DNA of 64,000 bases from Salpingoeca rosetta (lineage: Eukaryota > Protista > Choanoflagellata), in contig JAWQFM010000024.1 of NCBI GenBank assembly GCA_033442325.1, positions 862,027 to 926,026 on the forward strand. The letters are read 5' to 3'. The translations under genes and the position numbers were made by a program. Shown in pieces: positions 9,806 through 13,528 of the stretch; position 1 is the stretch's first letter, and every line of letters begins with the position of its first letter. Below the pieces are notes generated by a model. That model had not been told where the DNA came from and did not search any database. It worked only from the letters and a program-made list of their open reading frames with translations.

Positions 9806-9870
<65 letters not shown>

Positions 9871-9894
9871 GCTGTTGTTGTTGTTGTTGTTGTT
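9806..9894. repeat. (TTG)n microsatellite, intergenic/3' UTR
   Basis: Direct inspection. Confidence 0.95.
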
Positions 9895-10304
9895 CTTCTA
9901 CTACTACTACTGCTGGCCACATTCAATCACTCTCAATGAATAATTTGACCGTCTCGTCTTGCGTGGCTGCATGGGCTGTGCGTCGTGCCAGAGGAGAGTA
10001 CAGCAGTTGGCGCACGACATGAGAGCATGCACATGAAAACATACACGCTCAGCCTGCATCACACATCATCATCATCGTCAGCACCACACATACACTGCGG
10101 TGGATCGTGTGATGCGCACGTGCTTTTCTGTGGAAAACATTCGATAATATTCGGCAATCGGACGAGTCCAGCTGGGCGTGCTTTTTTCCTTCTTCCTCCA
10201 AGCAAGCCCTTCTTTGCATCTTGCTGCACACTTTCCACGCGCCTGTGCCTCGTGTTGCATCTCCTTCTGTCTCTCTCTCGCGCAACAACAACAACACACC
10301 AGCC

Positions 10305-12495
10305 ATGCCCACCGTGAGTGATGAGTTGGGAGAGAGGGTTAGGGACCCGTGTGGGGAAGCTGTGTCGATCGCGTCGACCGTGCTGTTGGGCTGCATGTTT
10401 GGTGGTGGTTCAGTACGTGTTGGCTGCAAACAGTGGCGTGCTTGTGTTTGTTGTTTGAAGAGTTGGCGCGCCTGTCATCACAAGCAAAGGAGTGGTGCGC
10501 AAACCACGATCATCACTGACGCACGAGCTACCAACACCACTACTGCCCAACACCACTGGTCTCAACCACCACCATTCGCCACCACCGGTCTCCACCACCA
10601 CTGCTCACCACCACCACTGTTCATTACCATTGGTGTCCACCACCCCCTGCTCACCACATCCCCCCTCCCAAACACGTTTCTGACTCCTCGCCTCCTTCTC
10701 TCCGTTTCTATTTGTTCGTGTGTAGGTTTCCGGCTACCTGACCAAGCTCGGCTACAAGTCCGGCAAGTGGCAGTCCAGGTTCTTTGTGCTGGACGACACT
10801 GCGCTGCGCTACTACACGGAGCAGAACGGCCAGCTTAAGGGCGAGATTCTCGTGAGCACCATCACCTCCGCAGAGGCTGTCAAGCCCGGCTGCCAGGTCG
10901 CCCCCGATGCCAGCACCACGGCCCCCAAGAAGCCCGTGGGCCCCTTCTGCCTGAAGATCACCACCCAGGTCAAGGGCACCCGCACCTTCTACTTCCTCGC
11001 CTCCTCCAAGGAGGAGCAGCTCAAGTGGATCAAGGCCCTCCTTCCCAACAAGGAGGACGGCAAGGGCGACCGCCCGTCCTGCCCCTACGCCACCAGCATC
11101 AACGGCGCCCCGCTCGCTGACCCGCAGTACGCCCTGCGCGCCGGCGTCCGCGGCCCGCTCCTCCTCCAGGACTGGCAGCTCGTCGAGAAGCACACGCAGT
11201 TCAACCGCGAGCGCATCCCCGAGCGCATTGTGCACGCCAAGGGCTCCGGTGCATTCGGCACCTTCACCGTGACGCAGGACCTGAGCAAGTTCACCAAGGC
11301 CAAGTTCCTGAACGAGGTTGGCAAGAAGACCGAGGTCTTCATCCGCTTCTCCACCGTCGCCGGTGAGCTTGGCGCCGCCGATGCCGAGCGCGACGTGCGC
11401 GGCGTCGCCATGAAGTTCTACACGGAGGAGGGCAACTGGGACCTTGTCGGCAACAACACCCCCGTCTTCTTCATCCGTGACCCATCCCTCTTCCCGGACT
11501 TTATCCACACGCAGAAGCGCGACCCCCGCACCAACATGCGCAGCAACGAGGCCGCGTGGAAGTTCTGGTCCGAGCACCCAGAGTCGCTGCACCAGGTGAC
11601 CATCCTCATGTCCGACCGCGGCATCCCCACGGGCTACCGCTTCATGAACGCCTACGGCAGCCACACCTACAGCTTCATCAACAAGGACGACGAGCGCTTC
11701 TACGTCAAGTTCCACTTCAAGACCCAGCAGGGCCACAAGCACTACACCAACGCCGAGGCCGCCAAGGTTGTCGGCGGCGACCGCGAGAGCTCCCAGCGCG
11801 ACCTCTACGAGGCCATTGAGCTCGGCGACTTCCCCCGCTGGAAGTGCTACGTCCAGGTCATGACCGAGGACGAGGCCGGCGCGTGCCCCTTTGACCCCTT
11901 TGACCTCACCAAGGTGTGGCCCCACTCCATGTACCCGCTGCACGAGCTCGGCTTCCTCGAGCTCAACCGCAACCCGGACAACTACTTTGCCGAGGTTGAG
12001 CAGGCCGCGTTTGCGCCCAAGAACACCGTCCCCGGCCTGGGCCACAGCCCAGACCCCATGCTGCAGATGCGCATCTTCTCCTACATGGATGCCCAGAACT
12101 ACCGCCTCGGCATCAACCACAACCAGCTGCCCGTCAACCGCGCCCGCTGCCCCATCTTCTGCCCGCAGTACCGCTCCGGCCACATGTCCCTCGGCGAGAT
12201 CAAGGACGCCAACTTCAACCCCGATGCCAAGGTCAACAGCATGCTTGAGCCGCCACTGAAGCTCGAGGGCGACGCCTTCCGCCCCGTCCCAAAGAACCCG
12301 GACGACTACACCCAGCCCGGCAACCTCTTCCGCCTGTTTGACCAGGACCAGCGCAACCGCCTCTTCAACAACATTGCCGACGCCATGGAGGGCGTGTCCA
12401 AGGAGGTCATGGAGAAGCAGATTGAGCACTTCTCCCGCTGCGACCCTGCGTATGGGGCAGGCGTGCGCGATGCCATCCAGCGCCGCAGCAAGTAA
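10305..12495 (+). CDS. cat: PH domain-monofunctional heme catalase (clade 3) fusion, ~592 aa; exon 1 10305-10313 (MPT), exon 2 10726-12495
   Basis: ATG CCC ACC|gtgagt ... tgtag|GTT TCC GGC TAC is in frame with the 10786..12495 ORF. PH motifs: [21 protein letters not shown]...LRYY...KGEI...FCLKITT...[20 protein letters not shown]. Catalase motifs: [15 protein letters not shown] (distal His codon 11233-11235), [28 protein letters not shown] (proximal Tyr codon 12082-12084). Strong GC3 codon bias. Confidence 0.96.
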
Positions 12496-13528
12496 ACCCG
12501 GCACCTGCTTGCTACTCCTCATCCACCATCCGTCACACCACCACAACCCACCACCACAACCAGAACCAAACACACCCGTCAACATCAAGTGCCAGCGACA
12601 CCACTGCGCGCAAGATGCGAAAAATCAACCAAACAGCCCGACACCGTGCGTGTCTTGCTGTTTGGCATTTGTCTTTCGCTGTGATCTTGTCGTCTTTTGT
12701 TTTTGTCTCGTTTTTCTTTGTTGTTGATTGGGTTGGTTTGCAATTGTTTGCTGGTGGCGTGTAGCGTACCAGCCCCCCCCCCCGGACGTTGTTGCTTTTT
12801 GGATGTTGTTTCTCTCTTGTTCTCTGCTCCAATTTGCCAATGACGCTTGCTTGTCCCCCCCCCCCCTTTGCTTTTACCCCTTTCTCTTCTGCTCCCTTCT
12901 CCTGTGTTCCCCTCCTGCTGCATAACTGGTCCCGCGTGCTGTGTTGTGTCTCTTCGATAAGTACACACGATTCTCCACGCAACTGCGTCAGCCAACCCAA
13001 CAGCACAGCACATTGCCGCCAGTGTCAAAGTATGCAACGCGTGGCTGTTGTTTGGTTATGTACATTCATTGATCCCACTTCGTTGTGTTGGAACGAGAAG
13101 ACGAGTAAGACTGTCATGCGGGGGTGGGGGTGTGGTTGTGGCTTTGCTGGCGGTTGTTGGCGATGAGCAGGATTGAATTGGTTGTTTGATTGCTTGCTTG
13201 CTGGCGTGCACGTTCGATCCAGCAATGACATGACATGACGTGACATGACAGAAGTCTCTCTCATTGACAAACGCACGTGTCAAAGAGTGAAAGAAGGAGC
13301 AAAGGGAAGAGGTGCATCTTCGTCTGTGCCAAAATACAGATGATGACTGTCCTTGGGTGTGCGTGTGTGGCTGTGGTGGGTGTGGTATGCACAGGAACAA
13401 GAGTTGCAGCACGAAGTGCCGCAGCGTCAAAACCACGACAACAAAACAAAAACCGAGCCATTAAACCACACGCAACAGTAACTCGTGTTGGTGACACACA
13501 CAATGACCAGCGGCACCTATTGATTGCC

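Follow-up and report, generated by a model that had tools for sequence, protein, structure and literature searches.

The window analysed here is a 64,000-nucleotide stretch of the genome of the choanoflagellate Salpingoeca rosetta (contig JAWQFM010000024.1, positions 862,027 to 926,026 of the forward strand), and positions are counted from its first letter. At 10305-12495 on the plus strand lies the catalase gene PTSG_08456 (EGD77363, F2UJR4), whose 592-residue product carries an N-terminal pleckstrin homology (PH) domain ahead of the catalase. Translated together, 10305-10313 and 10726-12495 give the NCBI protein "catalase [Salpingoeca rosetta]" with 100% identity, and when the 55.4-Mb assembly was searched in full with a Pfam profile, PTSG_08456 was the one catalase locus found genome-wide. 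The gene encodes a conserved, expressed and selected chimera of bacterial and host parts.

Gene structure and domain content

The gene model was examined by mapping RNA data to positions 9900-13000 of the window, namely two stranded RNA-seq runs together with an older transcript assembly. The splice from 10313 to 10726 was found in 25 and 70 reads of the two runs and in a transcript contig of 2276 nt, which spans 10249 to 12938 with the intron spliced out, and RNA depth in the intron was 0-7x as against 49-138x in the adjoining exon. Exon 2 (10726-12495) is an open reading frame up to its TAA codon, and depth over the PH/catalase boundary (11000-11150) was continuous in both runs, at 37-40x and 120-140x. 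Transcript 5' ends lay at ~10247 and no internal transcription start within the gene was flagged in the RNA-seq read ends, placing the PH region within the transcripts. In addition, no in-frame Met follows the start codon before residue 232, which lies C-terminal to the distal His173, and therefore internal initiation would not yield a catalytically competent protein lacking the PH domain.

The preliminary description of this DNA, made from its letters alone, had proposed that one exon encodes a PH domain, a linker and a catalase, that the distal His, the Asn and the proximal Tyr of the catalase are intact, and that the fusion is not a merger of gene models. The sequence, the coordinates and Pfam agree on the first point. 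As for the second, distal His173 (in VHAKG), Asn246 (VGNN) and proximal Tyr456 (RIFSY) are all present, and they, together with R170, V172, R210, S212, F251, F259 and R452, are each identical in 46 of 46 aligned catalases. The third is borne out by RNA reads that run unbroken over the PH/catalase junction. The first ~110 residues of exon 2 gave a significant match to the PH profile PF00169 (E 3.3e-16 for the domain alone and 9.5e-15 on the exon-2 translation; 55-60 bits against a cut-off of 25.1). An AlphaFold2 model of this part (mean predicted local distance difference test, pLDDT, 86) had a canonical PH fold with seven strands (residues 4-94) and a helix (98-108). The linker of ~15 residues that joins the PH domain to the very start of the catalase N-terminal arm had a pLDDT of ~50-55 or lower in both the isolated and the full-length models, and was 27-69% identical among orthologues.

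The catalase half is of the small-subunit type, as it contains only PF00199 and PF06628, has no C-terminal flavodoxin-like domain and ends eight residues after PF06628. Its sole NCBIfam match, to the HPII equivalog, scored 452 bits, under the cut-off of 1102, and gave no finer classification. Because the catalytic residues are completely conserved, we infer that the enzyme would carry out ordinary small-subunit catalase chemistry, that is, H2O2 dismutation, and by analogy with its family it probably forms a homotetramer.

Conservation of the fusion and origin of its two halves

We next consider how widely the fusion occurs. A single-sequence search and a search with a profile of the four orthologues, each against 5.8 billion proteins, returned the PH + Catalase + Catalase-rel architecture in only four clusters among their matches. 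Besides the S. rosetta protein, the orthologues with this architecture came from Microstomoeca roanoka (a complete EukProt transcript, 84% identity) and from two uncultured relatives, one in an ENA assembly (P0003/P0121, 83% identity) and one in a Logan assembly (P0004, 70% identity). The ENA and Logan sequences lie on 1.9-kb contigs that are probably transcripts, because they have UTR-like (untranslated region) ends and an uninterrupted reading frame that includes the first codons. In our own catalase tree, built without eukaryotic catalases, the four catalase domains of these fusions formed a single clade (SH-aLRT 100).

Searches directed at the PH region extended this set no further. A word-indexed search found nothing beyond the known orthologues; HMMER against 1.84 billion representatives gave, among the best 150 of 404 matches, one PH-catalase fragment and no other PH-catalase, and a Pfam scan of 10 likely candidates from this search found a catalase domain in none; a scan of JGI metagenomes with PH peptide patterns found no PH-catalase; and the ESM Atlas contained no PH + catalase cluster with at least 50 members. 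Rare or very divergent fusions may nevertheless occur elsewhere, with which these blank searches would be compatible.

Selection on the two halves was estimated with the Nei-Gojobori method from the three available orthologue coding sequences. The ratio of non-synonymous to synonymous substitution rates (omega) was 0.16-0.35 for the PH domain and 0.20-0.31 for the catalase half, as against 0.57-0.83 for the linker, and PH identity across the taxa was 62-89% at a synonymous divergence of ~0.4-1.3 substitutions per site. The low omega values in both domains indicate that the PH domain and the catalase are kept by selection and that only the linker is drifting.

The closest relatives of the catalase half outside the four orthologues are bacterial. 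In each of the two protein searches, a gap of ~470 bits separated the orthologues from the next 116 matches, which were two-domain catalases of 471-546 residues with 60-66% identity (one partial match at 52%). None of these 116 had a EukProt source, and every named one was bacterial (Alpha-, Beta- and Gammaproteobacteria, Calditrichota, cyanobacteria and others). Over ~470 residues, the catalase half was 62-65% identical to proteobacterial enzymes. Among PDB chains, 4E37, 1M85, 2ISA and 1QWL scored 569-612 bits, compared with 480-483 and 420 bits for other chains. The former we take to be the Pseudomonas (P. aeruginosa KatA), Proteus (P. mirabilis), Aliivibrio and Helicobacter catalases; the 480-483-bit chains are presumably bovine and human catalase and the 420-bit chain yeast catalase A.

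Two published data sets that contain the protein agree with this. In Supplement 2 of a survey of horizontal gene transfer (HGT) in S. rosetta (PMC7971027), PTSG_08456 is marked "FOREIGN" with the domains "PF00199;PF06628;PF00169", a best match to Kerstersia gyiorum (62.8%), an alien index of 402 and an empty M. brevicollis-orthologue column, and the main text of that paper makes no mention of catalase or PH. S. rosetta XP_004990707 has a long branch in the Newick tree of File S2 of PMC7237987, where it falls within the alpha- and beta-proteobacteria and next to a clade of betaproteobacteria (support 82). Neither paper discusses PTSG_08456. The G+C content of the gene at third codon positions (GC3) is 0.927, matching the value in the published S. 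rosetta gene table, and the contig is 1.19 Mb long; these features, the spliced intron and the RNA data exclude contamination. Judged from its sequence, the catalase half is proteobacterial in type and was acquired horizontally; it subsequently received an intron, took on the codon usage of the host and was joined to one of the host's domains.

The PH half has its closest relatives (among the best 150 of the 404 HMMER matches) in the N-terminal PH domains of choanoflagellate proteins whose downstream parts are unrelated. These include the M. brevicollis proteins XP_001749137 (PH...CH), XP_001742250 and XP_001748623 (PH+TPR), as well as proteins of S. punica, Didymoeca costata and Barroeca monosierra. 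Members of this subfamily share the signature G[YW]LTK[LI]G[YF]xSGKWQxR[YWF]F, and their strands 5 and 6 are separated by an insert, PG..V..A....KP, that is likewise conserved. A paralogue in S. rosetta itself, on contig C14, matches the PH-catalase in 13 consecutive residues, encoded by its first exon, and is ~32% identical to it over the remainder. Past the PH domain this paralogue remains collinear with the PH...CH protein of M. brevicollis, XP_001749137, of which it is probably the orthologue. Given the host PH subfamily and the S. rosetta paralogue, we conclude that the PH module originated in the host and became fused to the acquired enzyme. The preliminary description was thus right about the fusion itself but overlooked the bacterial origin of the enzyme, its status as the sole catalase, the choanoflagellate PH subfamily and the restriction of the fusion to a small clade.

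Two side observations concern the PH subfamily. In the C14 paralogue, a phase-2 intron splits an Arg codon, and the introns are full of (GT)n. Among ten subfamily members that were looked up, the only non-choanoflagellate one was P0187 from the EukProt transcriptome of Vermistella antarctica (Amoebozoa), which may reflect prey or a contaminant, or a wider distribution of the subfamily.

The coordinates of the gene features and of the C14 paralogue are collected in Table 1. A long microsatellite of (TTG)n units occupies 9810-9895, immediately 5' of the gene, and a separate plus-strand transcript ends at ~9953, as seen from a poly-A loose end and from RNA depth over 9900-10003. In the 5' UTR, CA at 10258-10259 appeared as GT in ~16-35% of the RNA reads of both raw-read runs; either the cultured lines differ here, or this is an artefact of sequencing close to the ends of transcripts. 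At 10678, in the intron, a 9-nt insertion (CCTTCTGCC) relative to the window is present in a DNA-like contig of run X4, owing either to polymorphism of the strain or culture or to a difference between assemblies. The poly-C tracts of the 3' UTR (~12764-12773 and ~12845-12857) were 1-2 nt shorter than the reference in 30-50% of the RNA reads and in contigs; slippage or an error of length in the reference could account for this, and reads also break into poly-G loose ends there.

Table 1. Features of the PH-catalase gene in the window and of the PH paralogue on contig C14
Feature	Position	Strand	Evidence
5' UTR	10247-10304	+	Read ends pile up at ~10247 in two RNA runs; no upstream ATG
Exon 1, coding part (Met-Pro-Thr, 9 nt; ATG at 10305)	10305-10313	+	Sequence; annotated protein N-terminus agrees
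Spliceosomal intron (412 nt, GTGAGT...TAG, phase 0)	10314-10725	+	Junction 10313>10726 in RNA
PH domain (residues 4-110; basic, pI 9.55)	10726-11046	+	Pfam, AlphaFold2, Foldseek
Flexible linker (residues 111-126)	11047-11094	+	Low pLDDT, high omega, low orthologue identity
Catalase core, PF00199	11092-12222	+	Pfam E 7e-180, 598.6 bits against cut-off 25; PDB matches to 612 bits
Catalytic codons His173, Asn246, Tyr456	11233-11235, 11452-11454, 12082-12084	+	Sequence
Catalase-rel, PF06628 (C-terminal helical region)	12295-12477	+	Pfam E 1.4e-21, 77 bits
Stop codon TAA (after ...QRRSK)	12493-12495	+	Sequence
3' UTR with two poly-C tracts	12496-12976	+	RNA coverage; transcript 3' ends near 12976
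PH paralogue on contig C14 (locus L013)	~5910-5173 of C14; exon 1 5910-5839, exon 2 from 5602	-	13-residue match in beta1-beta2

Possible membrane tethering and alternative roles of the PH domain

The protein bears no recognisable peroxisomal address. The consensus of the type 1 peroxisomal targeting signal (PTS1) is [SAC][KRH][LM]; the S. rosetta protein ends in -RSK, outside this consensus, as had been pointed out in the preliminary description, and the orthologues end in -QSN, -AAQ and -KRQ. Inspection of the N-terminus by eye revealed no nonapeptide resembling a PTS2. Homologues of Pex14, Pex19 and Pex11 are retained in the S. rosetta genome, and six-frame searches for Pex3 and Pex2/12, weak tests whose controls were equally blank, returned nothing. 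S. rosetta probably has peroxisomes, but from its sequence the PH-catalase is not visibly addressed to them. The genome also contains NOX/FRE-type FAD_binding_8 loci, which make membrane oxidases producing superoxide or H2O2 plausible. As a separate observation, both Pex19 (C2:1463851-1464006, minus strand, and 1480570-1480725, plus strand) and FAD_binding_8 (C15:1403641-1403925 and 1419234-1419518) gave pairs of equal-scoring loci ~16 kb apart, possibly recent segmental duplications (inverted in the case of Pex19) or assembly duplicates.

Several properties of the PH domain are consistent with binding to anionic lipids. Foldseek matched the PH model to PDB structures with a probability of 1.0 and TM-scores of 0.6-0.66, and the best matches (PLEKHA6, PLEKHA7, TAPP1, evectin-2, DAPP1, GRP1, Akt, P-Rex1 and ARAP3) are all binders of lipids or inositol phosphates. 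In an alignment of 46 PH sequences, K10, W18, R21 and Y32 were invariant and W104 was present in at least 90%, and K41 was invariant in all four PH-catalase orthologues. We take K10, R21, Y32 and K41 to be equivalent to inositol phosphate contacts in PH domains of the GRP1 and DAPP1 type. In all four orthologues the PH domain has an isoelectric point of 9.5-9.7, compared with 6.4-6.7 for the catalase half, and its net charge is +6 to +7. The nearest PH structures have differing ligands, so lipid specificity is not transferable by homology. A reading of "WQxR" as the mark of a FAPP1/CERT-like binder of phosphatidylinositol 4-phosphate (PI4P) came from short matches (E 1e-3 and 0.8) and was kept as a lead only.

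On balance we favour, with moderate confidence, the reading that the sole catalase of S. rosetta is a chimera that resides in the cytosol and is held by its PH domain on an anionic membrane. Without a peroxisomal signal, the enzyme would probably stay cytosolic. Because the flexible tether is attached at the start of the N-terminal arm, a tetramer of the kind typical for the family would display four basic PH domains, which would hold the catalase on a negatively charged membrane via anionic lipids or phosphoinositides. The lipid may be PI4P-like or phosphatidylserine-like and need not be a 3-phosphoinositide. The enzyme would thereby clear H2O2 at its sites of entry or production. Taken alone, membrane tethering by the PH domain, as judged from the sequence and the structural model, comes close to an even chance. 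More tentative is the fuller picture of a tetramer held by avidity on an anionic or phosphoinositide-marked plasma membrane, collar or phagocytic cup, or food vacuole of this bacterivorous organism, where it might shape local H2O2 gradients. The preliminary description had also suggested a part in tuning Tyr-phosphatase signalling, which, like phosphoinositide binding and recruitment by avidity, is hypothetical.

A number of observations weigh against parts of this interpretation. With regard to lipid binding, K10 and R21 of the K-Xn-(K/R)-X-R motif are present, but the (K/R) position is occupied by Gln (Q19) in all four orthologues and across the PH subfamily; the incomplete motif noted in the preliminary description is thus a property of every member, and the domain lacks the strict motif for high-affinity phosphoinositide binding. 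Furthermore, most PH domains do not bind phosphoinositides specifically, and a PDB sequence search with the PH part gave weak generic matches only (best E 1e-5). With regard to origin, our own tree names no donor: the stem of the PH-catalases is long (0.43), and this tree does not resolve the node at which it attaches. With regard to the transcript, RNA depth dips at 11148-11355 and climbs towards the 3' end; this looks like ordinary 3' or library bias, and a minor shorter RNA may also exist at this gene.

The strongest alternative, which we consider rather unlikely, is that the PH domain is a protein-interaction or regulatory module, docking the enzyme on a cytoskeletal or signalling partner or gating its assembly or activity. 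The incomplete phosphoinositide motif (Q19) is in keeping with such a role, as is the fact that the subfamily heads very different proteins (PH+CH, PH+TPR and PH+histidine phosphatase). Moreover, the beta1-beta2 string is near-identical between the paralogues, a pattern that a shared protein ligand could explain, and many PH domains are known to bind proteins. The presumed inositol phosphate contact positions (K10, R21, Y32 and K41), the net positive charge of the domain and the lipid-binding nature of the nearest structures speak for tethering to a membrane instead.

The remaining alternatives fare much worse. It is very unlikely that the PH domain is a functionless passenger of a neutral fusion: the limitation of the architecture to a small clade would fit this, but the domain has an intact fold, a much lower omega than the linker and well-preserved identity despite the synonymous divergence. 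Slightly less probable still is delivery to peroxisomes by a non-canonical or piggy-back route, with the PH domain being incidental. S. rosetta has kept Pex14, Pex19 and Pex11 homologues, and there are catalases in other organisms that rely on PTS1 signals of a weak and atypical kind; on the other hand, the four orthologue C-termini differ from one another and none is PTS1-like, no PTS2-like nonapeptide was seen, and a catalase of bacterial origin never carried a peroxisomal signal. Finally, an artefact, whether through bacterial contamination, faulty assembly or the merging of gene models, has nothing in its favour except the bacterial similarity of the catalase half and can be dismissed given the intron, the long contig, the host-like GC3, the stranded RNA reads over every junction and the presence of the fusion in three independent assemblies from other organisms.

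Significance and comparison with known systems

Our literature search brought up no description or discussion of a PH-catalase and no paper that combines "PH domain" with "catalase domain", in line with the preliminary description, which knew of no characterised protein of this kind. The protein, its Pfam content and its status as an HGT candidate are already public. Its role as the sole catalase, the lineage-specific host PH subfamily, the selection on both halves and the confinement to a small clade appear to be unreported. Catalases are among the best-studied enzymes. To our knowledge they almost always stand alone, and where they are targeted, a short peroxisomal signal is responsible; placing one through a conserved N-terminal PH domain is unusual. 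Since the PH domain sits on the only catalase, all catalase-dependent removal of H2O2 in S. rosetta passes through the PH-bearing form. The gene also illustrates how an acquired bacterial enzyme is integrated, in this case by gaining an intron, by adopting the codon usage of the host and by fusion to a host-specific domain. If tethering proves true, S. rosetta would provide the first known instance of a catalase placed by a domain that reads lipids. It would also be a clear case in which the closest relatives of animals have domesticated a bacterial gene by fusing it to a host targeting module specific to their lineage. The reach of the finding is limited to four related taxa, with no link to animal biology yet. 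Since S. rosetta is transfectable and CRISPR-editable, direct functional tests are feasible.

The catalase half resembles proteobacterial small-subunit catalases of the clade-3 type (PDB 4E37 and 1M85) in its Catalase + Catalase-rel layout, its heme-pocket residues and the lack of a flavodoxin-like domain. The proteobacterial enzymes start 3-10 residues before the N-terminal arm, whereas the S. rosetta protein has ~125 residues there (PH domain and linker), and its gene differs from theirs in having an intron and eukaryotic codon usage. The peroxisomal catalases of animals and fungi (bovine, human and yeast CTA1) belong to the same family and share its chemistry, but the PH-catalase is less similar to them (480-483 and 420 bits versus 612 bits), does not carry the C-terminal PTS1-type signals that they have and is not their orthologue. 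That the catalase fold tolerates added domains is evident from large-subunit HPII catalases, with their C-terminal Catalase_C domain, and from the coral allene-oxide-synthase-lipoxygenase fusion, which contains a catalase-related domain. In these cases the addition is C-terminal or a catalytic partner, and we know of none that is an N-terminal membrane-targeting or signalling module.

Compared with the lipid-binding PH domains of PLEKHA6/PLEKHA7, TAPP1, DAPP1, GRP1 and evectin-2, the S. rosetta domain has the same fold and keeps the beta1 Lys, beta2 Arg and beta3 Tyr, but is only 19-30% identical to them and differs in the Gln of its beta2 motif and in its long insert between strands 5 and 6. 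With the choanoflagellate N-terminal PH subfamily it shares the signature, the PG...KP insert and the N-terminal position, at 32-44% identity and with partners unrelated to catalase. In concept, the proposed arrangement is analogous to the PX domains of p40phox and p47phox, subunits of the phagocyte NADPH oxidase, in that a phosphoinositide-reading module places the chemistry of reactive oxygen species on a membrane. The domain families differ, and the PX-domain system places a producer of reactive oxygen species, whereas the PH-catalase would place a scavenger.

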